Of a stretch of 64,000 bases of DNA, positions 1 through 51,469 are shown piece after piece. This DNA comes from Amphiscolops sp. MND2022 (lineage: Eukaryota), in NCBI GenBank assembly GCA_964187785.1, contig CAXLNC010000593.1, positions 124,001 to 188,000 of the forward strand, written 5' to 3'. Position 1 is the stretch's first letter; each line of letters starts with the position of its first letter. The position numbers and the translations under genes are program-made. The notes beneath the pieces were generated by a model. It did no database searches. It saw nothing but the letters and a program-made list of their open reading frames with translations, and was not told the origin of the DNA.

Positions 1-3000
1 GGACCTAGAGAGTGTATCCAAGACATAATATCTACAGTGGAAGACTTCTGTGGGATCCCCGATTTGAAAACACGTGTTTCACTTGTTTTGAATGAGTTTC
101 ATGTCGAAAACATTACCTAATTTTTCGAAATTCTTACATCTCTGCAAAATCGGTCCTATATTGCTACTGATTCTCTTGGGGGACCTAGAGAGTGTATCAA
201 ACACATAATAGCCACAGTGGAAGACTTTTGTGGGATCCCCGATTTGAAAACACGTATTTCACTGTTTTGAATGAGTTTCATGTCGAAAACATTACCTAAT
301 TTTCTGAAATTCCTACATCTCTGCAAAATCGGTCCTATATAGCTACTGATTCTCTTGGTGGGCCCTAGAGAGTGTATGCAAGACATAATATCCACAGTGG
401 AAGACTTTCGTGGGATCCCCGATTTGAAAACATGTATTTCATTGTTTTGAATGAGTTTCATGTTGAAAACATTACCTATTTTTTCGAAATTCTTACATCT
501 CTGCAAAAACGGTCCTATATCGCTACTGATTCTCTTGGGGGGACCTAGAGAGTGTATTCAAGACATATTATCTACACTGGAAGACTTTTGTGGGATCCCC
601 GATTTAAAAAACACGTATTTCACTGTTTTGATTGAGTTTAATGTCGAAAACAATACCCAATTTTTAGAAATTCTTACATCTCTGCAAAATCGGTCCTATG
701 TTGCTACTGATTCTCTTGGTGGGACCTAGAGAGTTTATCCAAGACATAATATCCACAGTGGAAGACTTTTGTGGGATCCCCGATTTGAAAACACGTATTT
801 CACTGTTTTGAATGAGTTTCATGTCGAAAACATTACCTCTTTTTTCGAAATTCTTACATCTCTGCAAAATCGGTCCTATATTGCTACTGATTCTGTTGGT
901 GGGACCTAGAGAGTTTATCCAAGACATAATATCCACAGTGGAAGACTTTTGCGGGATCCCCGATTTGAAAACACGTATTTCACTGTTTTGAATGAGTTTC
1001 ATGTCGAAAACATTACCTCTTTTTTCGAAATTCTTACATCTCTGCAAAATCGGTCCTATATTGCTACTGATTCTCTTGGTGGGACCTAGAGAGTTTATCC
1101 AAGACATTATATCCACAGTGGAAGACTTTTGTGGGATCCCCGATTTGAAAACACGTATTTCACTGTTTTGAATGAGTTTCATGTCGAAAACATTACCTCT
1201 TTTTTCGAAATTCGTACATCTCTGCAAAATCGGTCCTATAATGCTACTGATTCTCTTGGGGGGACCTAGAGAGTGTATCCAAGACATAATATCCACAGAG
1301 GAAAACTTTTGTGGGATCCCCGATTTGAAAACACGTATTTCACTGTTTTGAATGAGTTTCATGTCGAAAACATTACTTATATCTTCGAAATTCTTACATC
1401 TCTGCAAAATCGGTCCAATATTGCTACTGATTCTCTTGGGGGGACCTAGAGAGTGTATCCAAGACATAATATCCACAGTGGAAGACTTTTGTGGGACACC
1501 GGATTTGAAAACACGTATTTCACTGTTTTGAATGAGTTTCATGTCGAAAACATTACCTATTTTTTCAAAATTCTTACATCTCTGCAAAATCGGTCCTATT
1601 ATGCTACTGATTCTCTTGGTGGGACCTAGAGAGTGTATCCAAGACATAATATCCACAGTGGAAGACTTTTGTGGGATCCCCGATTTGAAAACACGTATTT
1701 CACTGTTTTGAATGAGTTTCATGTCGAAAACATTACCTAATTTTTCGAAATTCTTACAGCTCTGCAAAATCGGTCCTATATTGCTACTGATTCTCTTGGG
1801 GGACCTAGGGAGTGTATCCAAGACATAATATCCACAGTGGAAGACTTTTGTGGGATCCGCGATTTGAAAACACGTATTTCACTGTTTTGAATGAGTTTCA
1901 TGTCGAAAACATTACCTATTTTTTCGAAATTTTTACATCTCTGCAAAATCGGTCCTATATTGCTACTGATTCTCTTGGTGGGACCTAGAGAGTGTATCCA
2001 AGACATAATATCCACAGTGGAAGACTTTTGTGGGATCCCCGATTTGAAAACACGTATTTCACTGTTTTGAATGAGTTTCATGTCGAAAACAATACCCAAT
2101 TTTCCGAAAATCTTACGTCTCTGCAAAATCGGTCCTATATTGCAACTGATTCTCTTGGGGGACCTAGAGAGTGTATCCAAGACATAATATCCACAGTGGA
2201 AGACTTTTGTGGGATCCCCGATTTGAAAACACGTATTTCACTGTTTTGAATGAGTTTCATGTCGAAAACATTACCTAATTTTTCGAAATTCTTACATCTC
2301 TGCAAAATCGGTCCTATATTGCTACTGATTCTCTTGGTGTGACCTAGAGAGTTTATCCAAGACATAATATCCACAGTGGAAGACTTTTGTGGGATCCCCG
2401 ATTTGAAAACACGTATTTCACTGTTTTGAATGAGTTTCATGTCGAAAACATTACCTAATTTTTCGAAATTCTTACATCTCTGCACAATCGGTCCTATATT
2501 GCTACTGATTCTCTTGGGGGGACCTAGAGAGTGTATCCAAGACATAATATCCACAGAGGAAAACTTTTGTGGGATCCCCGATTTGAAAACACGTATTTCT
2601 CTGTTTTGAATGAGTTTCATGTCGAAAACATTACCTATTTCTTCGAAATTCTTACATCTCTGCAAAATCGGTCCTATATTGCTACTGGTTCTCTTGGTGG
2701 GACCTAGAGAGTGTATCCAAGACATAATATCCACAGTGGAAGACTTTTGTGGGATCCCCGATTTGAAAACACATATTTCACTGTTTTGAATGAGTTTCAT
2801 GTCGAAAACATTACCTAATTTTTTGAAATTCTTACATCTCTGCAAAATCGGTCCAATATTGCTACTGATTCTCTTGGGGGGACCTAGAGAGTGTATCCAA
2901 GACATAATACCCACAGTGGAAGACTTTTGTGGGATCCCCGATTTGAAAACACGTATTTCACTGTATTGAATGAGTTTCATGTCGAAAACATTACCTTTTT

Positions 3001-4128
3001 TTCAAAATTCTTACATCTCTGCAAAATCGATCCTATATTGCTACTGATTCTCTTGGTGGGACCTAGAGAGTGTATCCAAGACATAATATCCACAGTGGAA
3101 GACTTTTGTGGGATCCCCGATTTGAAAACACGTATTTCACTGTATTGAATGAGTTTCATGTCGAAAACATTACCTTTTTTTTCAAAATTCTTACATCTCT
3201 GCAAAATCGATCCTATATTGCTACTGATTCTCTTGGTGGGACCTAGAGAGTGTATCCAAGACACAATATCCACAGTGGAAGACTTTTGTGGGATCCCCGA
3301 TTTGAAAACACGTATTTCACTGTTTTGAATGAGTTTCATGTCGAAAACAATACCCAATTTTTCGAAATTCTTACGTCTCTGCAAAATCGGTCCTGTATTG
3401 CTACTGATTCTCTTGGGGGGACCTAGAGAGTGTATCCAAGACATAATATCCACAGTGGAAGACTTTTGTGGGATACCCGATTTGAAAACACGTATTTCAC
3501 TGTTTTGAATGAGTTTCATGTCGAAAACATTACCTAATTTTTCGAAATTCTTACATCTCTACAAAATTGGTCCTATATTGCTACTGAGTTTCTTGGGGAC
3601 CTAGAGATTGTATCCAAGACATAATATCCACAGTGGAAGACTTTTGTGGGATCCCCGATTTGAAAACACGTATTTCACTGTTTTGAATGAGTTTCATGTC
3701 GAAAACAATACCCAATTTTTCGAAATTCTTACGTCTCTGCAAAATCGGTCCTATATTGCTACTGATTCTCTTGGGGGGACCTAGAGAGTGTATCCAAGAC
3801 ATAATATCCACAGTGGAAGACTTTTGTGGGATCCCCGATTTGAAAACACGTATTTCACTGTTTTGAATGAGTTTCATGTCGAAAACATTACCTAATTTTT
3901 CGAAATTCTTACATCTCTGCAAAATTGGTCCTATATTGCTACTGAGTTTCTTGAGGACCTAGAGATTGTATCCAAGACATAATATCCACAGTGGAAGACT
4001 TTTGTGGGATCCCCGATTCGAAAACACGTATTTCACTGTTATGAATGAGTTTCATGTCGAAAACATTACCTAATTTTTTTTCGAAATTTTTACATCTTTG
4101 CAAAATTGGTCCTAAATTGCTACTGATT
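1..4128. repeat. Tandem satellite array, ~180-bp monomer (179-181 bp), ~23 copies, begins before the window
   Basis: The unit ggacctagagagtgtatccaagacataatatccacagtggaagacttttgtgggatccccgatttgaaaacacg... recurs every ~180 bp (1, 181, ~361, 541, ~723...). It ends abruptly at ...gctactgatt (4128). Confidence 0.98.
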
Positions 4129-4231
4129 ATAAAGAAAATAGAAATGGTGAAAACACTTTTGCAGACATTCTGGTAACGTTCTGTGGAATGGAATTGTTTT
4201 TCGTCTTTCAGTCCATCCCACCATCACTCTC

Positions 4232-6447
4232 ATGGCGACGTTATTCTTTTATTCTTTTTGACCGCTACCCTAGCTGCAAAAAACGTCAGGTTGAAGGTCT
4301 ACATTGACCCAAATCACCAGAGTAATGGCCTCAAAGCAACCCCTGATGCTGCATTCATTTGATCTTATTTCGAGTGTATACAAGTTCAAACATAACCCAT
4401 CTCAAAAAAGCATACAATTTTTCTCTCAGATTGGACACGGAAGTGTTTACACTGCAAGATAGGGACCGATTCATGTTGCTAGAAGAGAGAAACCACTTTA
4501 TTGGCAATCAATTTTATTTATTTGCTTAAAGTTTGCGCACGTATCGAGAAAAAACTTTGGGCACTACACTCTTTGTGTATGCCCCATCAAATCTGAAGCA
4601 GACTCAGATACTTTTTGTAACTCTAACGAGTGCGAATCATTGGATTTCGATTTCATGGACAAATCAGAGTCCACCTGTGCACAGACTGAAAGTCAACATT
4701 GCTCATCGAACCTACTCTTCTGTCAAGCATCATCTATCTGGAACTCTGGAGAAGATAGCCGCTCTTTCTGAACTAGTTTCTCAACAGAGCGATGATTCAA
4801 AAACTTTCATGGAGAATATGGACCCTGGCTCTAGATTTCTTCTCCAAATAGCGCCTTGTTTCATTGCCCTCCCAAAGTGTAAACAATTGGAAAACGAATT
4901 AGCTGAGTTTAAAAATATGTGCAAACAAGACTGTTTTGCTATTTTTGATGTTTGCAAGACTTGGTTGGAAGTTGCAGAGCGAAGGCAAGTTCATATATTC
5001 AAAGACTTTGTCAAAAATATGTATCAAGTTCTGGAAACCTTGAACTTGGGCAGAGAAATCAACAAATCGAAGTGTCAGTTTTACAATGATTCAGAATGCA
5101 TATCAATAAATGCTACAGTGCTGAAAAAGAAGCTCGACTAAAACAAAACCTCCCATTGCTACGACTCTGATTACAAGGGTACTTCTGACAGAGGCCAAAT
5201 ATCGAAATCTGTATCGGGAATGTCTTGTGTAAAGTGGGATCAATCGAGAAAGTATGACGATCTGCAGGGGTATTCACTCAATACAATAAAGTATGCCGAG
5301 CTTAATGGTTCGGAAAATTTCTGCATGAATCCAATCAATGTCACGACACAGTCAGTCGATCAATCAAAACATTGGTGTTTCGTTGATTATCAAGGAACAT
5401 GGGAACAATGCACCGTGCCTATGTGTCACAGTGCAAATCCCATAGTGTTTGCATGCATAGTAGTTGCCGCATCTATCCTTGCTGCTGTGGCCATGACATT
5501 TATCATGTTACTACTGAAATGTACGTTGTAATTAGAAACGTGATCCCGCAACAACAAGAGTACCTCTACAATCTCCCTCCCTTTTTCATTGAAGATGACA
5601 CTGGTCTGTGACACTTTGACCGAAATCAATAGAAAAAGCTCTCGCGAGTCGATGAGGGTGAATTTGGAGTTGTTTTTAAGGCTCTAATTAAGATGTCTAT
5701 GAATGACAATTTGATAGTTGCCGTGAAATCCTTACACGAAGTGCGGACAATACGGAGCAGGAACATTTCCGCAGTGAGGCCAAATTGTTGAACGAAATCG
5801 ACCATGAAAACATTATCAAGTTATACGGTGTCTGTTTCGAAGGAGAATCCATGTACATGATATTCGAATACATGCCAAATAGAGATCTCCACGATTTCCT
5901 CCGACAAAGAGCGCCCAATGACAGTGAGCTATCTCAGTTGTTATCCAAATCCATACAGGTAGCGAGGGGCTTGGCGTACCTGGCCGAAAAACGATACATA
6001 CATAGAGATACTGCCGCGCGAAACGTGCTCCTCCGAAGGAAGTGTGAGGACAACTTCTTGCCGCTAAACACTGAGATTTTGGCTTGTCTCGAAGTGTGCG
6101 TGTTGGAGACTATTACAGACTCAGAGGCAAGTCCATGCTACCAGTGAGATGGATTCCACCGGAAGCTATTACTTACATGACTTTTACAGCCGCCAGTGAC
6201 GTTTACTCTTTTGGAGCATTGTTATGGAAATTTTCTCTTTTCGCAACCGTATGAAAATGTTTCGAACGAAGACGTTGTAGATCACATTCTTCAACAGGAG
6301 CTCCTAAAAGAACCAATTGGATGTCCCAATGCTTTGTACGGCATCATGAAGCAATGTTGGAACTATCAACCAAAGCAGTGGGCCAGTGCCCATGCTCTAA
6401 TCGAACTGCTACAAGTGGGAAAGATTTGTAATTTCACGGTTCCTTAA
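4232..6447 (+). pseudogene. Intronless Ror/MuSK-family RTK pseudogene, copy 1 (signal peptide-Ig-Frizzled CRD-kringle-TM-tyrosine kinase)
   Basis: ATG at 4232 gives MATLFFLFFLTATLA. ORF fragments carry CRD cysteines (PCFIALPKC..MCKQDC..C), kringle (SGMSCVKW, NFCMNP, WCFV), a TM segment and kinase motifs (HRDTAARNVLL; DYYRLRGKSMLPVRW in another frame). There are many frameshifts and stops. Confidence 0.9.
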
Positions 6448-7029
6448 GCGACAAGAAACCCCTAATTTGCACAATTGGACAATTGGTATGTTAATGCAGA
6501 AGCAATCATTATACAGCAGCGGGTTTTTTTTGTTGAACACTTTACTTTTGTTTTGTTAGTATTTATGTTTTGGGGACTTGAACAACACGCATGAAGTCCT
6601 CAGGGAACAGTTCGAGAGAGACCGAATTACTTTAGCCTCTCTCTCTCTGATTTTTTTTCATATTTGCTTCCAGATATTTGACATTATTCAATCCACGTTT
6701 TCCGAACATTTTGCGGAAAAAAACTAGTCTTCGAGAAGTTCCGAGTTCATTTCGTGAATCTTTTCCAAATGAAATTAGTCTGAAGCAATTCCGATCTCAA
6801 TTCGTGGTTCTTTTTCCCAAAAAACAGTGTTCAAGACATTCCGAGTCCAATTTGTGTTTTTTTCCGAAAAAAAATAGTTCAAGGAGATTCCGAGTACAAT
6901 TCGTGGTTTATTTCCCAAAAAAGAGGTTTGAAGAAATTCCGAGTTCAATTCATGAATGTTTTGCTAAATAAACTTCGTTTGAAGGAAAATATTCAGCTTC
7001 GTTTTTTGGAACCATTTAAAAAACTCTTC

Positions 7030-7640: not shown

Positions 7641-7857
7641 TACAAGGTTTCAATTTTAGTATGCTTTACTATTTTACAATTGCTTTATTTTTTATTAGTA
7701 ATCAAAATTTTCATTCATTTTCAATCAGTTAGAATTCAATCAGTTGGTAATCGGATTTTTCAGAGTAGAGTTTTCGGTGAGACAAGGATAATACTCTGGA
7801 CTTTTGAAGAAAGGTAGAGTTTTGTCATTCGAAACAACGCTTAGTGTAAGCTAGACT

Positions 7858-9149: not shown

Positions 9150-9420
9150 TCAGTTCATATCCCAATTACTGTCAAAATTTTCAGAATCAAGCATCATTTG
9201 TGTCATGAGACTTGTCAATCATTCACCTCAGTTTGTTTGTTTAGTTCAGGCATCTACTTTTTAGTAGTGCCAAACTGTCTAAAAACTTGCGGTGAAAGTT
9301 TACTCAGTTACGCAACTGCAACATTCTGAGACTTTTCAGCCAATCAGAATCGATTAAAAGTTTGGACAAAAGCATCCGCCATCAAATTAGTTGTCATTCT
9401 GTACCGTTTAAAATCAACAC
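9150..9420 (+). promoter_or_regulatory. Conserved non-coding block with CCAAT box, possible promoter region of the AT-hook/ZnF gene
   Basis: The block containing ttttcagccaatcagaatcga..aaagtttggacaaaa recurs at ~28290-28530, ~34295-34540 and ~47625-47875, each time upstream of AT-hook-gene exons or an RTK copy. Function is inferred. Confidence 0.3.
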
Positions 9421-11426
9421 TCTCTGTCACTAGTAATCTCTCTCACTAGTAATCAACACTCTCTCAATTGTAATTCTATTAATTCTATTAATGAAGCTCC
9501 GTTCAAGAATCATTGAAAACAGTTAGTTGAATTTCAGCTGAAGTTTTTTAAAAAACTTTTAATGTTCTTATCAAAACAATCTGAGTTCGAAAGTGGAAAA
9601 AAACTGATTCATTGCTCTATCTAAATACCTTCAATTACATTTTGTAGGGATTACATACCAAAAAACATAAGAGCAAACAACATAAACAAGCGATCCCAAG
9701 AAATTTTATCTGTAATGCTCATACTTTTTTCAGTGATACTTTGAATTGTGAAAGCTTTTGAAAACTAAAACTTTCGGATAGTTTCTGTTAATCCCCTCCC
9801 AGTAAGCGAAATAAATTAATCCCCCCAGTATCAGCGATGAGATTCAAATGCAGTTAGAGTTATGAAAAAATATAGTAATATAGAGTAATAGAAACTGGGG
9901 GTCGGTGGGGGGATGTTGTTGCGTGTTAAATCCGTAGGGGGGGATTAAAGGAAAAGATCCAAACTTTCTCGTAAACATTTTTGTATTTTTGTTTTCTGAA
10001 ACTATTGTATTTTTAATATTGTTTGCTCTTATGTTATTTGAGAATTCACTTTTTGTAGGAATTTGAAATTCATTTTAAAGCATTCTGTTTACAATTTTAT
10101 TATCAACTACTCTTGGAAGTCACGGTGATTCTTTGCTAGCTGCTGAGCTAGTCACAGTATATTAGAGTATAACCCATCTCCTCCTGAGGCAATAAAAAAC
10201 TAGCCGAAACGTTTCATGTTGTCGGATTTTTTTCTCCAGATTATAATACTTGTAATTATATTCAATCCGAGCCCAAAAGCTCGAAATACTATTTTTACTT
10301 CAATCTGAGTTGAAAAAGACATTTGGAAAACGCAATGACATTTACGCATAGAAGAGGAAGGTTCAAGATCCAAAATTGACCGCCTGGAATTTTTATAACA
10401 CCATATAATGTAGATTTTCAGTTATTGAAACGTTCCTTTTTGCAGGATTTGTAATTGAAAACAGGAAAATCACTTCAAATTCCGAGATATAAATAGTCTC
10501 AGGTGGGGTTTTCAGTAGAAAGCGAATCCGTTCAAATTCCAAAATTTTCTTCCAGGATTTTGAACGTTACGAAAAAGGCTATGCAAAACCCCGAAAAGAG
10601 GCCAACGTAAAAGTGCCTACTCTGTCCAGTGGTGTTCGACCAAATTAAACCCCTGAAGAAGCATTTGCATAGCATTCACCACTGGGCTGTTTTGATCACG
10701 CATTCAGGCATTTCTTTTGCTTTCATATCCGAAAATTGAAAACTTTTTAGTCAAAATAGCTGAAAAAAAAAGAAAGTAACAAAAAAACTTTAATTGCGAC
10801 TTTTTCTCAAGTTTATCTTTGGGAAGTTTCAAACAACATCAGAAATTTCTGAAACAGTCTTGATTGTGAGTTTTGTGCTGGTCACAGGGCAAAGGATCCG
10901 AGAGAAACGGCAAGCAAGTCCGTTCAAACGACCCAACGACACGTGTCCTTCAACGACCACGTGAAGTGTGCCATTTTGATGTGAGCCACGATTAAGGCAG
11001 CTTCCCCAAAACCCGATCAAAAACTTTGATAATGTCGTGTCATCAGTTTCTCCAAATGTCTTCTTCGGAGTTTTTGTTTTTTTTTGCACACTCCGAATTG
11101 CAAAAAAAGATTTCGAAATTCAATCAAGAAATCGAAATATTTTTTTTTAATCACAAACAATCTAAAAGTCTCAAAGTCAAATCACGTGTTTTAAATAACG
11201 TCTTCATTAATGAAGTTAAATAATAAAATCTTTCGCACGTGCGTAGGTTGTATTTTTGAGGACATTCTGAGGCTGTCATGAATTCCTACAGTTTTAACAT
11301 TTTATGACATTCTGTAACATACAATAACTCAGTTTAAAAGCTTTTATGCTCGTGTTACTATCCAAAGTGTTTAATAAAATCACCCTAAAAGATTCGGAGT
11401 TGTTTTTACCTTGTTTCAATTTCTAG

Positions 11427-14400
11427 AAGACTCTGTTCCCGAGTCAGACTCGGCAAACCCCGCGGCTGTGACTCCTCCAGAGTCCCATACAGCCCCCCCC
11501 CCCTTCCCCAGCACCCAGGCAGACACCGACACCTCGCACTCCCCAAAGGCGTGCTGCCAAAAGGAAACGAGGTTCGTTTTTTTTTCGCTTCATATAATGC
11601 TTGAAACATTAATTTTGGAACACTTAAATGGAACCTAACTTTCCTTGTTCAAACATTTTCGAGACTAACACGTTCTATATTTTCTTCACAGCCATTTTGA
11701 TGAAAAGATGTAGTACGTCGTTTGTCTGAAATTGTTACGATTTTATTATGAAACAAGGTTTTATGATTCAACGTGTTTTTTTTGTTCGTACATAATTGTT
11801 TGACATGTCTGAGACCAGGACCCCGCTTTGGTTTCGTCATTTTTAAATCAATGAATAAACCAGATGGGTCCTAGTCACAAAGTGTTCCGATAACTTATTT
11901 GTTTTATATTTCATGTTTCGATGTTATCAACTTCTATTCACAACACAAATGTCCTCATTGAACATTTTCCAGACCAGGGTTCACTTTGTATTTTCATTAT
12001 AATTAAGATGAATATATATTGTGTCCCCTTAGTCTGAAGGTGTTACTATATTGTTTTACTTTTAGTTAAAATGTATTTTTTTGAACTTCGACGCTCTTTT
12101 TGCTGGGAGCAGTGCTGGAACTATATGAACACGCAATTATAGCACCAGTATTGATTGTCAGACTAAATGCGTCGTTTTTGGTAGATCACTTAGCCCTCCT
12201 GAAGGTGTTCGAATTATCAATTCAGTATTTTATTAATTTTTCAGTTTCCTCGGAGTGTGTTCTGCGGAGAGGCGGACTGCCCCGCGGTGTCGGTCACCAC
12301 GAAGATTAACATTAAGAAGGACGACAACATCCCCCACTAGAAGGCGCCGTGCCTTCTGCAAATGAAGTGGTTAATTCTACTTTCATACATTTTCCAAAAA
12401 ATGTTTGAATATATTCTGAGAATGGTTAATTTCGACTTTCATGTTTGATTTGCCTCCCTTTTCCTTCACAAAAATTTTAATTTGATTCTCATTTGCATTT
12501 CGTCGAGAAAACATGGGAATTCCTAAGGTCTCAAAAAGCTATTTAAAAACGTTCCGAGAACTTTGTTTAAAATTGTTTGTTTTTGTAAAAGAATTGCGGA
12601 TTCAGCCGAAAAAATTACTTTTAAAAGTGCATTTGCTAAGAATAATAATCAAAACGCGCCAAGGATAATCGAGCTGAGAGGAAAACTCATCAAAAAAAAT
12701 AGAAATGGCGAAAAACAGTGCGATGCAAAAAAAAAACGAAATAATCAGAAAAAGAAAAGAAAGACTTTATTTTGTTAAAGTCTCGAACAACAACGAAATG
12801 AAAAAGGCAGGACAAGAATTTCTATTTTTTGCAAACTTTCCTGATAAAATTCGATTTAGACTTCGATACTTGATGCAAAATTGGGCAAAGAAACGATTAT
12901 TTACCGTGCTTAGAAAACTTTCATTAGATAAAATTCGTTTTTAGTAACGGCGAGAAACAGGACGACACAAAAAAGCCTCCCAAGAAATAATAACAAAAGG
13001 GAAAGAAAGGCTTGCTTTTGAAAATGGTTAATTTTAATTTTAATCTTTGATTTGAAAAGTAACTTGAAGGTATTGCGAGGACGTTGGATTAAATTGTTGT
13101 TTTTTGTTCTAGAGATGCAACACACCACTTCAGCGGCGCCAGTTAAAACTACTGCTCAAATTGAAAGTTCGTCACTCGCTGTTCTAGAAGGTACTTCGCA
13201 AACTGAATGTCCTTCTTTGGCCGATCGAGATGTTACTCCGCAAAATGAAAGTTCTTCACTGGCCGACGGTTAATTCCAACTTTCATTTTCGATTTGAAAA
13301 GTAACTTGAAGGTATTCCGAGAACGTCGGATAAAATTGTTGTTTTTTTTCTAGAGATGCAACAAACCACTTCAGCAGCGCCCGTTAAAATTACTGCTCAA
13401 ATTGAAAGTTCTTCACTCGCTATTCAAGAAGTTACTCCGCAAACTGAATGTCCTTCACTGGCCGATCGAGATGTTACTCCGCAAAACGAAAGTTCTTCAC
13501 TGGCCGACGGTTAATTCCAACTTTCATATTCGATTTGAAAAGTAACTTGAAGGTATTCCGAGAACGTTGGATAAAAGAACGTTTTTTTTCTAGAGATGCA
13601 AGTATGGGCACCTGAGGAGATGACCCCTGGCTCTAGTTCTACACCTCGTCGTCTGCCTTCAATTGGAGGTATACTTCAAAGAAGTATATTTTAAAACAAA
13701 TCCCCCCACCACTGAAAAATCAAACAAACAATGAAAAGGACCCTATAAGGTGTCATAATTGATTCTCATCATCGAGAAAAAACACAAGTTTGTTTCAGTA
13801 ATAATAGCTCTTAATAAGTGCTGTTAATAGAAATGATATTAAAATAAACTTGGTTAATAACGGTTTGAAATGTACTGTGTTTTTTCCAACGTTTAGAGAA
13901 CATCGAAATGTGTCTCGAAGACTAGACAAGACATGAAAACGGTGAGCAACAAATGGTCAATGGTAAAGTAAAACTTACTTTTAAAAGTTCATTGTTTGCG
14001 TTTTTGTTCCAAATTCTCAGAATTATCCAAGTGTTTTTGAAAAAAAGATCCAGGAAACAACTATTTCATTCATTGAGATATAATTTCGAAGTTTCTTACA
14101 CGTTTTGTATCATATTCTGTAAAACAGTTATCTCAGTTGCAATCTTCTGAAAAAACACTTTTACACATCTTGATAACATTCCGTTGAATGAAACTACTTT
14201 TTCTTTTTCTTGTTTCAGTCCATCCCACCGTCATAATAGACAATAGATGCAATACCGAAGAAGAAACAGAAGAAGCGACAACAAAACTAAGAAAACGAGG
14301 GCACCACCGCAAGGGCGAAGTGGTGGTAAAAGCTCTAAGACTGCGACGAAGAGGGCCTCAAAAAGAGGAAGAACAGTACAAGATTTCGTCGGAGTACCAA

Positions 14401-14805
14401 AATCGGCCGAGAAAGACAACGATTGAGAGACCGAGACAAAGAAGAGCCTCTAGACTCCACTACATACTCTGCGGGGAGGAGGTGGTGACCTCAAACATTG
14501 TGAGGCACTTCTCCTTGAAGCATTGCTACCCGCTAAAATTGCGGAATTACATCTTAAATAAAACCCGAATCCGCCACCAGCAACAGGGCAAGCACCTCAT
14601 TTTTAATGATTGCACTACTTGACTTCGGCGCTTTGTTGTAACTCGATCTCACACACACCATTTTGATTATTGTCATTTATTTGAAGTGCCTGATTTCATG
14701 AGCCTTGATGGTCTTTGTCGCAAGGCAAAGGCCATCATGGCTGTGTGCGATGGGGACTCGAACAACGCGTTTGACCTCCTGAAGGAAGAGTTGGGGAGAG
14801 ACTAA
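11427..14805 (+). pseudogene. Multi-exon AT-hook/tandem zinc-finger gene (AHZ), copy A, disrupted
   Basis: Phase-1 exons at 11427-11571, ~12245-12370, ~13115-13268, ~13353-13509, ~13594-13668, ~13897-13961 and 14219-14805. The last exon has CILC..RHFSLKH but an in-frame TGA at 14620-14622 replacing a Cys, and a degenerate AT-hook (RGHHRK). Confidence 0.8.
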
Positions 14806-19234: not shown

Positions 19235-19382
19235 NNNNNNNNNNNNNNNNNNNNNNNNNNNNNNNNNNNNNNNNNNNNNNNNNNNNNNNNNNNNNNNNNN
19301 NNNNNNNNNNNNNNNNNNNNNNNNNNNNNNNNNNNNNNNNNNNNNNNNNNNNNNNNNNNNNNNNNNNNNNNNNNNNNNNNNN
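19235..19382. other. Assembly gap (148 N)
   Basis: Run of N. Confidence 1.
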
Positions 19383-20082: not shown

Positions 20083-22234
20083 GCCAAGGCGTTTATCAAT
20101 AAGAAGAACGACTCCTTCGCCCACCAGAAGGCGCCATGCTACTCGCAAACGAATTGGTTAATTCTACTTTCATACATTTGCAAAAAAATTACTTGAAGAC
20201 ATTCTGAGAATAGTTTATTTCAACTTTCATAATTGATTTGCCTCCCTTTTCCTTCACAAAATTTTGATTTTTTTTTGTACACAGAAATGCAGACTCAGGC
20301 GGAAAACTTACTTTTAAAAGTCCATATTTTCATATTTTTGCAAATTTTTCCCGAACAAAATTCGATTTAGAATTCGACACTTGATGCAAAATTGAGCATA
20401 GAAATGATTATTTACCGTGCTTAGAAAACTTAGATAGATAAAATTCGTTAGATAAAATTCGTTTTTAGAAATGGCGAGAAACAGGGCGAGGCAGACAAAA
20501 GCTTCCCAAGAAATAATAAGAAAAGGGAAAGAAAGGCTTGCTTTTGAAAATGGTTAATTTCAACTTTGATCTTTGATTAGAAAAGTTTTTTGAAGGTATT
20601 CCGAGAACGCTGGATGAAATTGTTGTTTTTTTCTAGAGAAGCAACACACCGCTTCACGGAACGAGCCCTCCTATCCAACAAGCGCCGCAATTCTTGGAGC
20701 AACCGCTTCTGAAGTGCCCGTGGACTCTGGTTAATTTCAACTTTGATCTTTGATTAGAAAAGTTCATTGAAGGTATTCCGAGAACGTTGGATGAATTTGT
20801 TGTTTTTTTCTAGAGAAGCAACACACCACTTCACGGAACGAGCCCTCCTCTTCAACAAGCGCCGCAATTCTTGGAGCAACCGCTTCTGAAGTGCCCGTTG
20901 ACTCTGGTTAATTTCAACTTTGATCTTTGATTACAAAAGTTTATTGAAGGTATTCCGAGAACGTTAAATGAAATTGTTGTTTTTTTCTAGAGATGCAAGT
21001 ATGGGCTCCTGAGGAGATGGCCACTTGCTCTAGTTCGACGCCTCACCGTCCATCAATTGGAGGTATATTTTAAAATAGTATATTTTTAAAACAAATCCCC
21101 CGCCACTGGAAAATCAAACAAACAATGAAATTAACCCTATAAGGTGTCATAATTCATGTTCATCATCGAGAAAAAAAACGAAAGTTTGTTTCAGTATTAA
21201 CAGCTCTTAATAGAGTTCCTAATATCTCTTAATCGAAATAATATTGATAGAAATCTATTTGATAGCGTTTTGCAATGTATTGTATTTTTCTCAACGTTTA
21301 GATGACACAGAAGAAATTATCGAGATGTGTCTCGAAGACGAGCCAAACCTTGACGACCAAGAGCAGCGGATGCTCAATGGTAAAGTAACACTTACTTTTA
21401 AAAGTACATTTATTGCGTTTCTATCCTAATTTCTCAGTTTTGTCAGTGTTTTTGAAAAAAAAAGATCCATGAAGAAACTATTTCATTCATTCAGATATAA
21501 TTTCGACTTTTCTTACACATTTTTTTCATATTCTGTAAAACAATGTTATCTCGGTTGCAATCTTGTGAAAAAACATTTGCAGACATTTTGATAACAGTCC
21601 GTTGGATGAAACTGATCTTCTTTCAGTCCATCCCACAATCCCACAACAGATAGAAGAAGAAAAAACAGACGAAGAAGAAGACGAAATACAAGAAGAAGAA
21701 GCAGGACCATCAACGTCAAGAAAGCGAGGGCGTCCCCGTAAAGGGGAACAAGTACCAGAAAAGCCAGTCAAAATACGCCGCCGAGGGCCACAAAAGGACG
21801 AAGCTACCTACAAAACCTCCGCTGACTACCGTGGCAGAAGACATACCAAAATAATTCGAAACCGTCCCAGAAGAGCATGCAGACACCACTGCATCGTCTG
21901 TGAAGAAGAGGTCCTCACGTCAAACATCGTTAGGCACATGTCACTTGTGCACAATTACCCGCTGAAGTTGCGAAATTACCTTCTCGATATCACTCGAATA
22001 AAACATCAGCAACAAGGGAAGAACAGGGCTATTAAAGACTGTCTCCATTGTATGAGGAGATTTGTGATAGCCAGCAATCACCGCCACCGTTTCTATCCCT
22101 GTAAAATTGTCGATGTACCTAATTTCACGAGCCTTGATGGTCTTTGTCTTAGGGCAAAGGCCATCATGGTTCTTTGCGATGGGGACTTGCGCGACGCGTA
22201 TGAAGTCCTCGGGCAAGAGTTCGAGAGAGACTAA
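20083..22234 (+). CDS. AHZ gene copy B, apparently intact in all visible exons (5' end lost in gap)
   Basis: Phase-1 exons at ~20083-20159, ~20637-20730, ~20813-20908, ~20991-21062, 21301-21379 and 21627-22234 read through in frame. Acidic tract, AT-hook RKRGRPRK, CIVC..RHMSLVH and CLHCMRR..H..C. Confidence 0.8.
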
Positions 22235-24867: not shown

Positions 24868-24904
24868 AAGATCTTAGCTGAATTCGCTAAGTTTAGTTTC
24901 AGTT

Positions 24905-27422: not shown

Positions 27423-29569
27423 AGGAAAGCATGTATTTTAAGAAAAGGACGCCGATCGAGCAGCGTGTATCTGTTCTTCGGATTCAGGATCCGATAACAT
27501 TTTATTCAACTCATTTATTCGCATGTAAACTACTTATGTTTTTCGGTTCAATTTATTTTAATCTTTCTTATTTCGTTTTGTATCATCCAAAAATTACCCA
27601 CCATTTTGATCAGTCACCCAGAATTCTCATTTACGACTTTGGTAAGTTTCAGTTCATTATAATAACATTCAAAAAGAATTTTGGTTTTTTATATCAACAC
27701 ATTTGCCTTTTCAGAGTTATTTTAATAACTGGGGAGATTCTTTTCAAAACAAAACTGATTAAGGAAATTCCGAGAATAAGTCGTGGTTCTTCTTAAACAA
27801 AATAAGTTTGAAGAAATTCCGAGTTTAATTCATAATTATTTTGCCAAATAATGTTCGTTGGAAGGAAAACAACTGGATTCGTTTTTTTTGGAATCATTTA
27901 AAAAACTCTTCCCATATTTGATATGACTGTTGTTTCAAACGCGAAGTTCGGTACCCTCCGGCGCTAATTTTGTCTAAATGTAGTCTCACAATGTCTTCAA
28001 AAAATTGTTTTCGCTAACTTATTAGATTTCCACTTAGTTGTAGTATCAGAATGTCTTCAAAAATTTTTTTTTCAAACACTTGTCAGAATTCTGGCTCAGT
28101 TGTAGTCTCAGAATGTCTTTAAAGAACTTTTTTCACTAACATCAGAATTTTCGGTAATTTCTTCTACCCGTGTTCTGAGAGAAAACAACGAATCTTAACT
28201 TGGAAACTTGAGGAAAGAAAAGAAACTTAGAAAAAAGTAAGAAAGGAATTTCCCTAATAAATTGAATGAAAACCAATCACTAATTAGTCAAAACATTCAG
28301 TTCATATCCCGATTACTGTCAAACATTTCGAAATCAAGCATCATTCGTGTCAGTTTGTTTGTTTTGTTGCAGTTAAAGCTGCCTAAACTGCCTAAAAGCT
28401 TGCGGTGAATGTTTACTCAGTTACGTAACTGTAACATTCTGAGAATTTTCAGCCAATCAGAATCGAGTAAAAGTTTGGACAAAAGCTTCCGCCATTAAAT
28501 CAGTTGTCATTCTGTACCGTATAAAGTCAACACTCTAGTGTAATTCGATTAATTCTATTAACAGTAATTCTAATAATTCTACGTGTATTAATGAAGCTCC
28601 GCTCAAGAAGAATCCTTGAAAACAGTTAGTTGAAGTTCAGTTGAAGTTTTTTTAAAAGCTTTTAATGTTCCTATCAAAACAATGTGAGTTCGAAAGTGTA
28701 AAAAAACTGATTCATTTTATCTGTAATGCTCATACTTTTTTCAGTGATTATTTTGAATTGTGAAAGATTTGGAACACTAAAACTTTCGGATAGTTTCTGT
28801 TAATCCCCTCCCAGTAAGCGAAATATTCTTAATCCCCCCAGTATTAGCAATGAGATTCAGTTGCAGTTAGAGTTATGAACAAAATATAGTAATATAGAGT
28901 AAAAAAAACTGGGGTCGGTGGGGGGGGGGGTTGTTGTTGGCTGTTAAATCCGTGGGGGGGAGGGGGGAATTAAATAAAAAGATCCAAACTTTCTCGTAAA
29001 CATTTTGTATTTATGTTTTTTGAAACTAATGTCTTTTTAAAATTGTTTGCCCTTATGTTATTTGTGAATTCACCTTTTGTAGGATTTGAAATTCATTTTA
29101 ATGCATTCTCATTACAATTTTAGTGTCAACTACTTTTGGCAATCACGTTGATTTTTTTCTTAGCTAGCTGCTTAGCTAGTCACAGTATATTAGAGTACAA
29201 ACCATCTCATCCTAAGGCAATAAAAAATTTAGCCGAAATGTTTCATGTTGTCGCAGTCTTTTATCTAGAATATATTACTCATAATTATAATCATTCCGAG
29301 CCCAAAAGCTTGAAATATTTTTTTAATGCAATCTGAGTTGAAAAAGACATTTGGAAAACGCAATGACAATTACGCATAGAGGGGGGTGGTTCAAGATCCA
29401 AAATTGACTGCAAGAAACGCCAAATAATGTAGATTTTCAGTTTTGAAATGTCTCTTTTCGCGGGAATTATAAATGAAAACAGGAAAATCACTTCAAATTC
29501 AAAGATATACAAAGGGTTTTTTAAAGAAACTCTCTGAAAGAGTTGTTTTTAACTTGTTTCAATTTCTAG

Positions 29570-32450
29570 AAGACTGTGTCCACGCGGCTGTGACTCCTCC
29601 AGCCCCCCTTCCCCAGCACCCATCTAGACACCTCGCACTCCTCAAAGGTCACCGCGTGCTGCCAATAGGAAACCAGGTTCGTTTTTTTCGCTTCATATAG
29701 TGTTTGAAACATAAATATTTCAACATACAAGTTTCCTTTGTGAAACATTTTCGAGACTAATGCGTTCTATAGTTTCTTCATTGTCATCCTAATGAAACAC
29801 TATAGGGGAGCGTTAGTATGAAATTGTTACGATTATATTTTGAAACAAGTTACTATGAATTAACTTATTTTCATAACCGAATGCAATTGCAGAAATTCTG
29901 GTTCCAAGTTTCAATAATCACCTGTTGTTATATATTTCATGTTTCAATGTTATCATCGACAAATGTCCTCGTTCAACAATTTCGAGACCAGGGTTCAATT
30001 TGTCTTTTCATTATAATTTAGATGAATATACATTGTGTCCCCTTAGTCTGAAGGTGTTACGATATTGTTTTATAATTTTAGTTACGATATATTTTTTGAA
30101 CTTAGACCCCCTTGTTGCTGGAAGCAGTGCTGGAACTATATGAACACTCTATTTTAGCACCAGTGTTGATTCTCAGACTAAATGCGTCGCGTTTGACTAT
30201 CTTTTTGGTTTGAATTATGTGTTTTTGGAACGAAACAACTTTGGTAAATCACTTAGCCCTGTCCTGAGAGTGTTCGAATTATCATTTCAGTTTTTTTTAA
30301 ATTTTTCAGTGTCCTCGGAGTGTGTTTCCCCGCGGTGTTCGGCTGAGGGACGGACCGCCCCAAGGTGCCGTTCGCCAAGGCGTTTATCAATAAGAAGAAC
30401 GACTCATTCGCCCACCAGCAGGCGCCATGCTACTCGCAAACGAATTGGTTAATTCTACTTTCATACATTTGCAAAAAAGTACTTGAAGACATTCTGAGAA
30501 TGGTTAATTTCAACTTTCATATTTGATTTGCCTCCCTTTTCCTTCACAAAAAAATTACTTTGATGCTTATTCGAAATTCGTCGAGATTTCTAAGGTCTCA
30601 AAAAACTATTTAAAGACGTTCCGAGAACATTGTTTGAAATTGTTTTTTTTTGTAAATAGAAATGCGGATTCAGCCGGAAAACGCCGCCAAGGATAATCGA
30701 GCTGAGGAGAAAACTCATCAAAAAGAAAATAGAAATGGCGAAAAACAGTGCGACGCAAAAGCTGCAAACGAAATGATAAGAAAAATAAAAGAAAGTCTTA
30801 GAAAACTCTCAGTAAAAATAAAATTCGTTTTTAGAAACGGCGAGAAACAGGGCGACACAAAAAAAAGCTTCCCAAGAAATTATAAGAAAAAGGAGAGAAA
30901 GGCTTGCTTTTGAAAATGGTTAATTTCAACTCATATTCGATTCAAATAATTACTTGACCGTATTCTGAGACCCTTGTATAAATTTGTTTTTTTTTTCTAG
31001 AAATAGAATCCCAAATGGCATCCCACGTGCAAGAAAGACAAAAAATCGCAGCTTCTGTACAAAGCACCACTGAGCAAGCGCCCGACGGTTAATTTCAACT
31101 TTCATATTCGATTTGAAAGGTAACTTGAAGGTATTCCTAGAAAGTTGCAACCTACTCATAAAAGTAACTTGAATGTAAACTGAGAACTATGAATAAAATT
31201 GTTGTTTTTTTCTAGAGATGCAAGTATGGGCTCCCGAGGAGATGGCCCCTGGCTCTAGTTCTACACCTCGTCATCCCCCTTCAATTGGAGGTATATTTCA
31301 AAATATTATTTTTTAAAACAAATCCCCCACCACCGAAAAATCAAACAAACAATGAAATGGACCCTATAAGGTGTAGTAATAAATTCTCATCATCGAGAAA
31401 AAAACACAAGTTTGTTTCAGTAATAATAGCTCTTAATATTCGCTGTTAATAGAAATATTATTAATAGAAACTTGGTAAATATCATTTTGAAATGAACTGT
31501 ATTTTTTTCTACGTTTAGAGAACACAGCGGAAATTATTGCGCTGTGTCTGGACGAGGAAAACATGGACGAGGAACGAGAAATGCTCAATGGTAAAGTAAA
31601 CCTTACTTCTAGAAGTACATTTATCGCGTTTTTGTTCTAATTTCTCAGTATTGTCCTAGTGTTTTTGAAAAAGGATCCAGGAAAAAACTATTTCATTTAT
31701 TGAGCTATAACTTCGAGTTTTGTCACGCATTTTGTTTCATATTCTGTAAAACAAAGTTCTCTCAGTTGGAATCTTCTGAAAAAACTTTTGCAGACCTTCT
31801 GATAACGTTCCGTTGATTGAAACTGTTTTTCTTCTTTCAGTTCATCCCAGTGCAAGAAGAAGAAGAAGAAGAAGAAGAAGAAGAAGAAGAAGACTATTTT
31901 GAAGAAGAAGAAGACAAAGAAGAGCAACAACCGACGAAAAGGAAGCGCGGGCGCCCCCGAAAGGGCGAAGTGGTGAAAAAACAGACAAAAATAATATGAA
32001 GAGGCCCCCAGAAGCCAGAGAATGAATACCGCATGAGTTCTGAGTACTCGAGAAAAACAAAAACCAAAATTGAGGAACAGGAGACGACGAAGTTGCAGAC
32101 ACCACTGTATACTCTGCGGGGAGGAGGTGGTGACCTCGAACATTGTCAGGCACCTCTCCTTGAGCCACTGCTACCCGCTAAAGTTGCGGAGTTACATCTT
32201 AGATGTAACCCGAATCCGCCACCAACAACAGGGCAAGCACCCCATTATTAATGACTGTACTACCTGTCTTCGGCGCTTTGTGGTGACTCGTGCCCACCGT
32301 CACCATTCCATTGATTGTGTTTTGACTGAAGTTCCTGATTTCACGAGCCTTGATGGTCTTTGTCTTAGGGCAAAGGCCATCATGGCTGTCTGTAATGGGG
32401 ACTTGAACAACGCGTTTGAACTCCTCAAGGAAGAGTTGGGGAGAGACTAA
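29570..32450 (+). pseudogene. AHZ gene copy C, disrupted
   Basis: Phase-1 exons at ~29570-29676, ~30310-30447, ~31001-31088, 31216-31290, ~31519-31590 and 31841-32450. The last exon has a 5-bp deletion, (GAA)12, AT-hook KRKRGRPRK, an in-frame TGA and a 2-bp deletion. Confidence 0.85.
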
Positions 32451-33680: not shown

Positions 33681-35379
33681 ATCAATTTTATTTTAGCAAT
33701 TTATATCAATTTATATTAGCAATTTATGTCAATTTAAATTAGCAATTTGTCCTGTTTATTCGCAATTATTTAGAAGAGAATTAAATTACTTAGTAATCAC
33801 ATTTTTCAAATAGTGTTTTTAATGAGACGAGGATAACACTCTAGACATTGGTAAAAAAAGTTCAAGTTTGTCCATTCGAAACAACTCTTAGTATAACTTA
33901 GTTGATTGGCCCAATTTCGCAGGTAATGAAAATTTAGAGCAGTTTCAAGTGAAAGTCATCAGATTTAATCATCAAATTTCATCACTATCAGATTTAATTA
34001 GGTAATAATTTAGGTTCAAAATGTTTTCGGAAAGTGCTTTATGAGAAAACAATACACGATACAAAATATTCTCAAAAAACAAAACAATAGTCTCAACTTT
34101 TTGGAACAATTTTTTCTTCAAATTAAAATTTCTCACTGAGGAATGAAATCCTCACTCGGTTTTCGTCTCCGAATTTCTTCAACACAATTTTTTTCACTGA
34201 CCAATCAGAAACCTCGCTCTGTTTCAGACTCAGAATATCTTCAAAATAATTTTTCTTCAAAAACATTTCCATGATATTCTGAATTGTACATTTAGTTCAT
34301 ATCCCGAATACTGTCAATAGTTTCAAAATAAAGCATCAATCATGGCTTGTGACTTGCCACTGGTTGCCAGCCAGTGACCTCAGTTTGTTTGTTTTTGCTT
34401 ACGCACGCATCTCTCTGGTGGTGCCAAAGTCTACAATCATGATGTATATGTTTACTCAGAATTTTCAGCCAATCAGAATCGAGTAAAAGTTTGGACAAAA
34501 ACTTCCGCCATTAAATCAGTTGTCATTCTGTACCGTTCAAAATTGTGTCACTTCATTTTTCGTCCAATTTATCAGTTCGCTCTAACGAGAATCGTAATTT
34601 CAATAAATTTGCCTCAGACTTTGCATCTTTCAAAAACTTTGCCACCATCATTATTTTTTGCCTGATTTAGATAGTCAATTCAATCATGAAACTGTGGTCC
34701 CGAATAGTTCCAATAATTCAAAACAGTAAGTTAGTTCACATTTAGTTTAAATGTTTTTTTAAGTTTCAAATAACACAAAAATTATATGATTTTCACTAAT
34801 CATAAAAATGAAATTTGACAACTTACAGCTTGTTCGGCATTTCTGAGACCAGGACCTCGCCTTGGTTTCGTCATTTTTAATTCCATGAATAAACCAGGTG
34901 GGTCCTAGTCACAAACTGTTCCGATATTGTGTTTGTTTTGTTTCATATGTTTCGATGATATCAATCACAATTGTCCTCGTTCAACATTTTCGAGACCAGG
35001 GTTTACTTTGTATTTTCATTATACTTTAGATGAATATACATTGTGTCCCCTGTCTGAAGGTGTTACGGTATTTTTTTCTATCATAGTTACGATATATTTT
35101 TGAACTTAGACGCTTTTGTTGCTCGAAGCAGTGCAGGAACTATATTGACACTCCATTATAGAGCTAGTATTGATTGTCTGTCTAAATGCGTCGCGTTTGA
35201 CTTTCTTTTACGATGAATTCGTTTGGAACATTGAGGTTTTATTTTTATTTTTTTTTCTTGAACGTATGCATATTACAATATGACAATTATCAAAAAAATG
35301 AAGTAACAAAAACGTCCAAGCAGGACAGAAAAGGAGCATAATCAGCTTCTTCGAGTTTCTGCATGCCATTGTTCCTTAA

Positions 35380-35414
35380 ATCTCTGCAAAATCGGTCCTA
35401 TATCGCTACTGATT
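35380..35414 (+). other. 35-bp fragment of the 180-bp satellite monomer inside non-satellite sequence
   Basis: atctctgcaaaatcggtcctatatcgctactgatt followed by ataaagaaaatagaaatggtg, the same continuation as after the satellite end at 4128. Confidence 0.9.
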
Positions 35415-35499
35415 ATAAAGAAAATAGAAATGGTGAACAAACACTTTTGCAGACATTCTGGTAACGTCCTGTTGAAAGAAATTGTTTTTTGTCTTTCAG

Positions 35500-37805: not shown

Positions 37806-38139
37806 ACACTTTACTTTCTTTGTTAGTATTTGTGTTTCGTGTCTTGCGCGACGTGTAAGAGATTCCAAGTACAATTCGTGGTTCTTTTTCACCCAAAATT
37901 CTTCTAAAAACTCCGAGTTCATTTCGTGTTTCTCCTCATAGTCTGAGAAAATTCCATATCATCTCGTGGTTTTCCAAAAAAAACAGTCTTCAAGAAATTC
38001 CGAGTACAATTTGTCTTTTTTCCCAAAAAAGAGTTTGAGAAATTCCGAGTTCAATTCATGGTTTTCTTCCAAAAAAATTCGTTTGAAGGAAAATAATTAG
38101 ATTCGTCTTCTTGGAACCATTTAAAAAACTCTTCCCATA

Positions 38140-51143: not shown

Positions 51144-51469
51144 ACACTTTACTTTCTTTGTTAGTATTTGTGTTTCGGGTCTTGCGCGACGTGTAAGAGA
51201 TTCCAAGTACAATTCGTGGTTCTTTTTCACCCAAAATTCTTCTAAAAACTCCGAGTTCATTTCGTGTTTCTCCTCATAGTCTGAGAAAAATCCATATCAT
51301 CTCGTGGTTTTCCAAAAAAAACAGTCTTCAAGAAATTCCGAGTACAATTTGTCTTTTTTCCCAAAAAAGAGTTTGAGAAATTCCGAGTTCAATTCATGGT
51401 TTTCTTCCAAAAAAAATTCGTTTGAAGGAAAATAATTAGATTCGTCTTCTTGGAACCATTTAAAAAACT

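Follow-up and report, generated by a model that had tools for sequence, protein, structure and literature searches.

The window analysed here is a stretch of 64,000 nucleotides from Amphiscolops sp. MND2022 (GenBank assembly GCA_964187785.1, contig CAXLNC010000593.1, positions 124,001 to 188,000 of the forward strand), and consists of AT-rich, repeat-filled eukaryotic DNA with a GC content of 31-45%. It holds members of an AT-hook/zinc-finger gene family, termed AHZ, together with three copies of a Ror-like receptor tyrosine kinase (RTK) gene, RTK1, RTK2 and RTK3, each of which is situated where the main AHZ exon would be expected. We consider it probable that the body of AHZ exon 2 was replaced at the DNA level by an intronless Ror-family gene, followed by amplification and decay of the hybrid. 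Related loci outside the window, designated L001 to L009, are those reached via protein look-ups; L002, L003, L004, L007, L008 and L009 were obtained from one public assembly sample, ERZ25074608, and the RTK of L009 is a fragment.

The main coding exon of AHZ is present in four copies in the window, AHZ-A to AHZ-D, whose positions are given in Table 1 with those of the other features. A conserved block of ~85 nt, containing a CCAAT box and a TCAGTT initiator-like motif, lies 140-220 nt 5' of a short first exon, which comprises an ATG and 10-13 further codons, measures 31, 34 or 40 nt, invariably ends in phase 1 and carries the donor GT(T/A)AGT. The promoter-like block and the first exon were found in AHZ-A, AHZ-C and a distant paralogue in L009. 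In AHZ-A, joining the first exon to the phase-1 acceptor preserves the open reading frame (ORF) of exon 2, and AHZ is therefore described as a two-exon gene. The paralogues are diverse, with 52-96% identity. A GAA-repeat expansion at the start of exon 2 accompanies a disrupted frame in AHZ-C and AHZ-D (31850-31900 and 45190-45230), and the matching copy of L008 (2425-3060) is open. We also note that runs of N at 19235-19382 and 19883-20082, 5' of AHZ-B, mask the promoter and first-exon region of that copy.

According to the original prediction, all three RTK copies begin with the end of the AHZ intron and the start of the AHZ exon, and AHZ sequence resumes behind the RTK; its coordinates and motifs were all found to be correct on re-checking. 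The sequence tttcag directly followed by TCCATCCCAC occurs at 4206 (RTK1), 35494 (RTK2) and 48827 (RTK3), at the AHZ exon starts (14213, 21621, 31835 and 45174), and in L002, L003 and L004. The 5' junction of each RTK copy is composed of ~72 nt of the 3' end of the AHZ intron, the acceptor and 15 nt of the AHZ exon. The similarity holds on alignment, in which the AHZ-B intron end scores 73 against the RTK1 leader, with a shuffle background of 14.3 +/- 2.1 and an equal score in 0 of 500 shuffles. On the 3' side of RTK1, the stop codon of the RTK itself is followed by ~34 nt of filler, then by the final 17 codons of AHZ with its 3' flank, and the match between 6571-6972 and AHZ-B 22180-22557 attains a score of 101 (shuffles 16.9 +/- 2.2, 0/500 equal). 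The short AHZ match noted at the same place in RTK2 and RTK3 was recovered as well; it covers 18-19 nt (37839 and 51177 against 22181), scores 26-29, is equalled by 0-3 of 500 shuffles, and borders on 49-bp repeats. About 540 nt of the AHZ exon is missing at the capture site, that is, it was exchanged for the RTK and not merely interrupted. Both junctions thus bear out that the RTK coding region takes the place of the body of the AHZ main exon.

Table 1. Positions of AHZ and RTK features and of major repeats in the 64-kb window
Feature	Position	Strand	Remarks
180-bp satellite array	1..4128	.	~23 monomers; reaches past the left window edge; adjoins the RTK1 leader
RTK1, remnant of AHZ-intron 3' end	4140..4211	+	polypyrimidine tract and CAG acceptor
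RTK1, first 15 nt of AHZ exon 2	4212..4226	+	phase-1 start, ..HPTIT
RTK1, Ror-like RTK pseudogene body	4232..6536	+	ATG 4232; stop 6534-6536
RTK1, last 17 codons of AHZ exon 2 and AHZ 3' flank	6571..6972	+	former stop 6623-6625 mutated
AHZ-A, promoter-like block and first exon	9326..9521	+	block 9326-9414; exon 9491-9521 (31 nt, phase 1)
AHZ-A, exon 2	14219..14805	+	AT-hooks and zinc-finger body; disrupted
AHZ-B, exon 2	21627..22234	+	open from end to end; reference for both junctions
AHZ-C, promoter-like block and first exon	28439..28624	+	block 28439-28520; exon 28591-28624 (34 nt, phase 1)
AHZ-C, exon 2	31841..32450	+	GAA-repeat expansion and frame disruption
RTK2 unit, promoter-like block	34455..34543	+	CCAAT box and TCAGTT initiator-like motif; 97.6% identical to the AHZ-C block
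RTK2 unit, AHZ-type first exon	34686..34725	+	ATG, 40 nt, phase-1 donor GTAAGT
RTK2, predicted intron	34726..35499	+	AHZ-intron block 34830-35233; satellite fragment 35375-35414; AHZ intron 3' end 35433-35499
RTK2, exon with RTK pseudogene	35500..37805	+	GTG at 35520 replaces the RTK ATG; stop 37803-37805
RTK2, short 3'-end remnant of AHZ exon 2	37839..37857	+	followed by 49-bp repeats
AHZ-D, exon 2	45180..45787	+	AHZ-C duplicate without promoter and first exon
RTK3 unit, promoter-like block	47787..47868	+	
RTK3 unit, AHZ-type first exon	48018..48057	+	phase-1 donor
RTK3, exon with RTK pseudogene	48833..51143	+	GTG 48853; stop 51141-51143
RTK3, short 3'-end remnant of AHZ exon 2	51177..51195	+	
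Tandem pair of 13.34-kb segments	31216-44553 and 44556-57956	.	98.8% identical
Minisatellites of 49 bp / 66-67 bp	6801-8457, 22436-25366, 32651-33890, 37857-39435, 51195-52774, 60440-62406		

Damage in the RTK copies of the window was scored against the intact ORF of 791 codons in L002, the protein of which is designated P0001. The RTK body is colinear with this uninterrupted frame, in agreement with its initial description as free of introns. For RTK1, identity to the L002 ORF is 90.7%, and the copy has 6 in-frame stops besides at least 8 indels that shift the frame; RTK2 is 98.2% identical with 5 frameshifts; RTK3 is 98.3% identical with 3 frameshifts, every one of which is common to RTK2. 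All three are pseudogenes, no working RTK gene is present in the window, and for annotation they should be labelled as pseudogenes within rearranged AHZ units.

Both junctions are common to nine RTK copies, namely RTK1-3, L002, L003, L004, L007, L008 and the fragment in L009, and this identity argues for one capture event. In the tree the chimeric copies group as a single clade with 100% support, in the arrangement ((RTK1,((RTK2,RTK3),L002)),(L003,L004)). The non-functional remnant of AHZ C-terminal coding sequence behind the RTK stop in RTK1 identifies the AHZ exon as the recipient. Since common flanks alone give no direction, an opposite order of events was weighed, in which the flanks originally belonged to the RTK and a zinc-finger body later displaced it and founded the AHZ family. 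This is extremely improbable, given that the remnant still comprises the former AHZ stop, that diversity among the AHZ paralogues exceeds that within the one chimeric clade, and that the RTK genes of L001 and L005/L006, discussed below, have no AHZ flanks.

The captured cargo is a Ror-family RTK composed of a putative Ig-like region, a Frizzled-type cysteine-rich domain (Fz-CRD), a Kringle, a transmembrane segment and a kinase. In P0001 the tyrosine kinase domain is matched by PF07714 with E=3.7e-89, and the catalytic motifs GEGEFG, VAVK, HRD and DFG are legible. Among PDB sequences an EGFR-labelled entry ranked first for the kinase, and the best matches were otherwise TrkB, TrkA, TrkC, MuSK and ROR1. 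The Kringle next to the membrane is matched above the Pfam cut-off (PF00051, E=6.5e-13), its six cysteines are invariant in the alignment with Ror orthologues, and ROR1 Kringle structures are fold matches with a TM-score of 0.7. The Fz-CRD falls below the Pfam cut-off (Fz, E=0.0018), and its ten cysteines are invariant or nearly so in comparison with Ror orthologues. The AlphaFold2 (AF2) model of the ectodomain has a predicted local distance difference test score (pLDDT) of 65 overall and 50-65 in the Fz-CRD part; its top fold matches, the CRD-Kringle of human ROR2 (E=1.5e-7) and the WNT-binding module of Drosophila Nrk (E=4.3e-7), are consistent with a Ror-type ectodomain. No Pfam match covers the putative N-terminal Ig-like region; AF2 folds residues 1-110 of the modelled piece into a beta-sandwich (pLDDT 75-89), for which the fold matches are of Ig type.

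The nearest full-length relatives with an annotation, matching across ectodomain and kinase, are labelled Ror or ROR1-like in Macrobrachium, Pollicipes and an unnamed holothurian record; a Lymnaea relative matching over the same regions is annotated only as "Tyrosine-protein kinase receptor", and for Ror of Glossina and Aedes the best matching stretch is over the kinase. The annotated Ror relatives are placed as an outgroup in the tree. The captured protein has the organisation of the Ror family (human ROR1/ROR2, Drosophila Ror/Nrk) and MuSK, with the Fz-CRD, Kringle and transmembrane parts, a kinase of the Trk/MuSK/Ror type and a putative Ig-like part. It is nevertheless very divergent from known Ror proteins, with 25-29% identity in the ectodomain and a long stem branch, and in contrast to them the chimeric form has no C-terminal tail. 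Unlike the ROR1 pseudokinase, it keeps the catalytic motifs (GxGxxG, VAVK, HRD and DFG).

The closest RTK without AHZ flanks is encoded in L001 (P0002) by a single uninterrupted ORF of 894 aa with a longer C-terminal tail. No AHZ similarity was detected in the sequence upstream or downstream of it, the alignment scores lying inside the shuffle range; on these scores the idea that the upstream region of L001 matches the AHZ intron, which would reverse the story, was rejected. A second assembly, ERZ26859043, contains L005 and L006 (P0112 and P0259), single ORFs of 998 and 1018 aa, which have in common with L001 the C-terminal end and two blocks of the 3' flank in conserved order. The synonymous divergence (dS) is 0.86 between L001 and the chimera and 1.9 between L001 and L006, by which the capture belongs to the L001 lineage and postdates an ancestor already intronless in the captured region. 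Homology to L001 stops within the coding region of the C-terminal tail, before any 3' untranslated region (3'UTR), and is followed by ~30 nt of T-rich filler and then by AHZ. Derivation of this filler from the L001 3'UTR was considered and rejected as not significant (an equal score in 12 of 200 shuffles); the filler is T-rich and of low complexity. We also note a full-length match to 5.8S rRNA at L001 15191-15342 on the minus strand (93.8 bits, Rfam scan), ~2.5 kb from the host Ror-like gene. It is the sole Rfam result in the 22.7-kb L001 locus, where no match to small- or large-subunit rRNA was obtained, and represents either an orphan piece of rDNA or a repeat derived from 5.8S.

The absence of introns had been read as the mark of a cDNA-derived gene, on the view that an intron-bearing host RTK gave rise to a processed cDNA, which reverse transcription or template switching put into the AHZ exon, as in jingwei or TRIM5-CypA. 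The RTK body without introns agrees with such an origin, and there are well-known retrocopies in which 5' exons of a host gene were recruited (PMC5470649). An intronless host orthologue had, however, been named in advance as refuting the cDNA origin, and L001 and L005/L006 are also intronless over the captured region. Because the nearest relatives without AHZ flanks have no introns either, their lack in the chimera carries no information on retroposition; a like warning against reading intron absence as retroposition is given in PMC5470649. As first reported, neither poly(A) nor a target-site duplication (TSD) is visible: no A-run stands at the 3' junction, and on reading the two RTK junction sequences, which differ, no matching duplication was seen. 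The captured piece stops inside the parental coding region and not past the 3'UTR, and part of the AHZ exon was exchanged where simple insertion would only interrupt it. Passage through a processed cDNA is accordingly judged unlikely, and a DNA-level event is the simplest reading of the capture. Nothing relevant on intronless Ror genes was found in the literature.

The chimeric retrogenes with host 5' exons that have been reviewed, jingwei, a copy of Adh in yande of Drosophila, and TRIM5-CypA of owl monkey and macaques (PMC5470649), resemble the AHZ/RTK hybrid in several respects. An intronless coding region lies within another gene and uses its promoter and upstream exon via splicing (predicted here), the C-terminal coding part of the host gene is displaced, and selection acts afterwards. 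In contrast to the AHZ/RTK hybrid, with its intronless parent lineage and no poly(A) or TSD, the retrogenes show the hallmarks of retroposition and have intron-bearing parents. The AHZ/RTK insert is, moreover, cut at its 3' end within coding sequence, the AHZ host part contributes only ~16-19 residues, and the hybrid has been amplified to many, mostly dead copies.

A chimeric transcription unit was part of the original prediction. The promoter-like block and an AHZ first exon are situated 5' of the RTK in RTK2, RTK3, L003, L004, L007 and L008, and the predicted introns of the chimeric units measure 496-2650 nt and contain pieces of the AHZ intron. The first exon 5' of the RTK copies retains its ATG, phase and donor, and its lengths differ by multiples of 3 only. 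The predicted spliced N-terminus, for example MKLWSRIVPIIQN-I-HPTITPV-ATLFF..., leads into the core of the RTK signal peptide. In L008 the predicted splicing, of a first exon at 5394-5433 to an RTK exon that begins at 6071, yields an intact ORF of 781 aa, which is intact only if read from the first-exon ATG; the corresponding positions in L003 are 9454-9484 and 9981. The RTK ATG was expected in frame with the phase-1 acceptor; this holds for RTK1, and RTK2 and RTK3 have GTG at that codon, as do L002, L004, L007 and L008. A GTG at the RTK start is tolerable only if translation begins upstream, which fits use of the first-exon ATG. The chimeric unit is thus supported in its structure, by the AHZ first exon, the promoter-like block and the phase match, while its transcription is a prediction from sequence.

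The ratio of nonsynonymous to synonymous divergence (dN/dS) between the L002-type and L003-type chimeric lineages is 0.36-0.40 (p<1e-8). As all divergence between these two lineages is later than the capture, the value indicates that the hybrid was functional and under constraint for some time.

Several points weigh against this account. In the protein tree with outgroups, L001, the chimeras and L005/L006 are left as a trichotomy, and a closer parent, possibly with introns, could lie beyond the loci surveyed. As the parent has no introns, an RNA intermediate may have taken part. RTK1 and L003 retain the RTK ATG, and the ancestral chimera could have used this codon. The ORF of L002 is intact, yet it is without promoter block, first exon and ATG; the promoter and first exon of this copy were lost by deletion. 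Promoter function, splicing and initiation at the first-exon ATG are predictions from the DNA itself, and the protein collections searched contain no transcript-derived proteins of this RTK family. The dN/dS values within the young L002-type clade span 0.43-0.93, most of them without significance, and many chimeric copies carry stops or frameshifts, so that the chimera may no longer be working in any copy. In the P0001 cluster 7 of 12 sequences are truncated. The copies counted as intact are L008, L002 and the one at the P0309 locus.

Part of these observations would suit a history without chimeric expression, in which the flanks left by AHZ have no function, the RTK copy either relied on its own ATG with a nearby promoter or never worked, and the frame match, which by itself has a probability of 1 in 3, is due to chance. 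The ATG retained in RTK1 and L003, the missing first exon and promoter of L002 and the near-neutral evolution of recent copies are all in keeping with it. Such a history is on the whole unlikely: the dN/dS between the chimeric lineages is taken to mean that the hybrid was expressed and constrained, the first exon has kept ATG, phase and donor with length changes in multiples of 3, and L008 can be read as an intact protein solely from the first-exon ATG.

Two further observations concern individual chimeric copies. In L003 (11525-11942) an insertion of 418 nt interrupts the kinase domain, and L004 carries it at the same place, RTK codon 511. Short terminal inverted repeats (GGTTGTC / GACAACC) and an imperfect 13-nt duplication of the target accompany the insertion, which begins with GT; the second duplicate ends in AG, and intron-like removal restores the frame exactly, joining ..KAIIK to RCMDD... 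The insertion recalls transposon-born introns. The proteins P0314 (944 aa) and P0316 (831 aa) both show Trp at the usual RTK stop. They were considered as stop-loss or fusion forms, and this was rejected for the reason that L007, the source of P0314, has an in-frame TGA at codon 492, which implies that TGA was called as Trp; by the "W" at the usual stop, TGA was presumably read as Trp in P0316 too. Long "intact" ORFs from the protein collection of P0314 and P0316 hence need checking at the DNA level.

In the window, in L008 and in L009, the AHZ/RTK units follow one another head to tail, with minisatellites of 49 bp and 66 bp between them, and L002-type copies are found on at least nine contigs of one assembly. 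In the window, minisatellites of 49 bp and 66-67 bp follow on the 3' side of every AHZ and RTK unit. They eat into the AHZ 3' coding end at points that differ among paralogues (RTK2, RTK3, P0106 and P0110), and on this ground they look like rearrangement breakpoints. RTK3 is derived from RTK2 through the 13.34-kb tandem duplication. The left breakpoint of this duplication is inside the AHZ-C intron and cut off the promoter and first exon, which explains their absence from AHZ-D; AHZ-D adjoins the 3' end of a minus-strand gene with SET and zinc-finger domains. The stretch 23362-23864, 3' of AHZ-B, matches the upstream region of RTK2 (33801-33956 and 34888-35217) and passes without an RTK straight into 49-bp repeats; deletion of the RTK from a former unit may account for it. 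Tandem or segmental duplication explains the spread, and a mobile element is unneeded.

The satellite array at the left end of the window adjoins the RTK1 leader, so that any promoter or first exon of RTK1 would fall outside the window. Only ~72 nt of the AHZ intron adjoins the RTK, and a 40-nt piece of the 180-bp satellite lies just 5' of it. This piece of the monomer occurs in the predicted introns of RTK2, RTK3, L002 and L007 (35375-35414, 48708-48747 and L002 9943-9982), sits there at the exact point at which the array meets RTK1 in that copy, and is absent from L003 and L004.

It had further been proposed that the RTK was captured "by the element", and a transduplication may be envisaged in which the AHZ unit is all or part of a transposon that acquired and spread the RTK, perhaps moved by recombinase-like neighbours. 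Pack-MULEs, Helitrons and CACTA elements transduplicate host genes, and the likeness lies in host gene sequence held between the two ends of a repeated unit and amplified along with it. The AHZ and RTK units are multi-copy over many contigs, and close to them lies a multi-copy minus-strand family characterised by a SET domain, by a zinc finger akin to that of AHZ and by motifs recalling tyrosine recombinases. No terminal inverted repeats (TIRs) were found at the unit borders, the stretch 27000-40500 containing only one 30-nt internal inverted pair; Helitron ends and long terminal repeats were not looked for. No transposase or reverse transcriptase, nor any other enzyme domain, was matched by Pfam in the scanned AHZ ORFs, the ORFs of introns and spacers not being included in that scan. 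Among the loci surveyed, only head-to-tail units between minisatellites, an order that fits tandem duplication, and only the RTK as cargo were seen, with neither copies at unrelated sites nor multiple cargos. In contrast to Pack-MULEs, Helitrons and CACTA elements, the AHZ/RTK units have no TIRs and no TSD seen at the RTK junctions (Helitron ends not checked), stand in tandem, and carry a full-length ORF with evidence of selection instead of a fragment. Transduplication by a mobile element is therefore regarded as quite unlikely.

The minus-strand neighbour itself occupies 41512-44553 and 54918-59335 as a multi-exon or frameshifted gene, with a SET domain (PF00856, E=2.9e-8), an AHZ-related zinc finger and a domain conserved over 13 ENA-only protein clusters. 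The motifs of the conserved domain, R...HKTGQYYDV...RKYR...GHTQQTAEKHY, recall Crypton-type tyrosine recombinases. A tyrosine recombinase identity was examined and found no support: Pfam gave only Phage_int_SAM_1 at E=0.18, searches of PHROGs and PDB with the single sequence or a profile returned no match, and the AF2 model, with a pLDDT of 46, is too poor for use. It is very doubtful, though conceivable, that the AHZ unit acts as an expression cassette, mobile or prone to recombination (promoter, ATG mini-exon, phase-1 intron and 3' end), bounded by minisatellites, which swaps its exon, amplifies host ORFs and is perhaps mobilised by the recombinase-like genes. If it were so, a receptor kinase truncated at its C-terminus but intact in its catalytic part would have been captured in a manner that parallels, at the DNA level, retroviral oncogene transduction.

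The sequences establish the two junctions and their single origin, the Ror identity of the cargo, the lack of introns in its relatives, the conserved first exon with its phase, the dN/dS values and the pseudogene state; the DNA-level mechanism and the promoter function, splicing and translation of the chimera are inferred. By a DNA-level copying event, probably ectopic double-strand-break repair or replication template switching, an intronless host Ror-family RTK gene of the L001 lineage would have entered exon 2 of a single AHZ member. The copied stretch would extend from ~5 nt before the RTK ATG to ~30 codons beyond the kinase domain and would have replaced the whole AHZ exon save its first 15 nt and its last 17 codons with the 3' flank. 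The hybrid would thereby have retained the AHZ promoter-like block, the first mini-exon (ATG and 10-13 codons, phase-1 donor), the intron, the acceptor and the 3' end. A two-exon gene of this kind is predicted to express the RTK after splicing, with translation beginning at the AHZ ATG and the old RTK signal peptide ~21 residues in. Purifying selection would have acted on the hybrid for a time; tandem and segmental duplication in the minisatellite-rich AHZ cluster would have followed, and most copies, including all three in the window, would then have decayed.

A family of Schistosoma japonicum with a common core promoter and signal-sequence exon provides a case of DNA-level chimeras that arise by segmental duplication and illegitimate recombination (PMC3434034). 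As in AHZ/RTK, duplicons share a promoter and first exon and differ in the downstream coding sequence, and flanking repeats are thought to mediate DNA-level recombination and spread. The downstream parts in Schistosoma are novel ORFs, whereas in AHZ/RTK a complete conserved receptor kinase replaces the zinc-finger exon. By origin, the AHZ/RTK chimera is closer to the DNA-level chimeras of repeat-rich duplicated regions than to retrogenes. It is a clear but fairly ordinary instance of chimeric gene formation, and the kind of event is already known.

The case cautions that an intronless copy is no evidence of retroposition if the parental lineage is also intronless. It also offers a well-resolved natural example of a complete signalling receptor moved onto the promoter, start codon, intron and 3' end of another gene, the use of which is predicted, a rewiring that would have been accomplished in one DNA-level step and followed by amplification and loss. 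If L008 or L003 is expressed, the organism would possess a Ror paralogue specific to its lineage, newly regulated and lacking the C-terminal tail, which would bear on the origin of new genes and on Wnt/Ror signalling.

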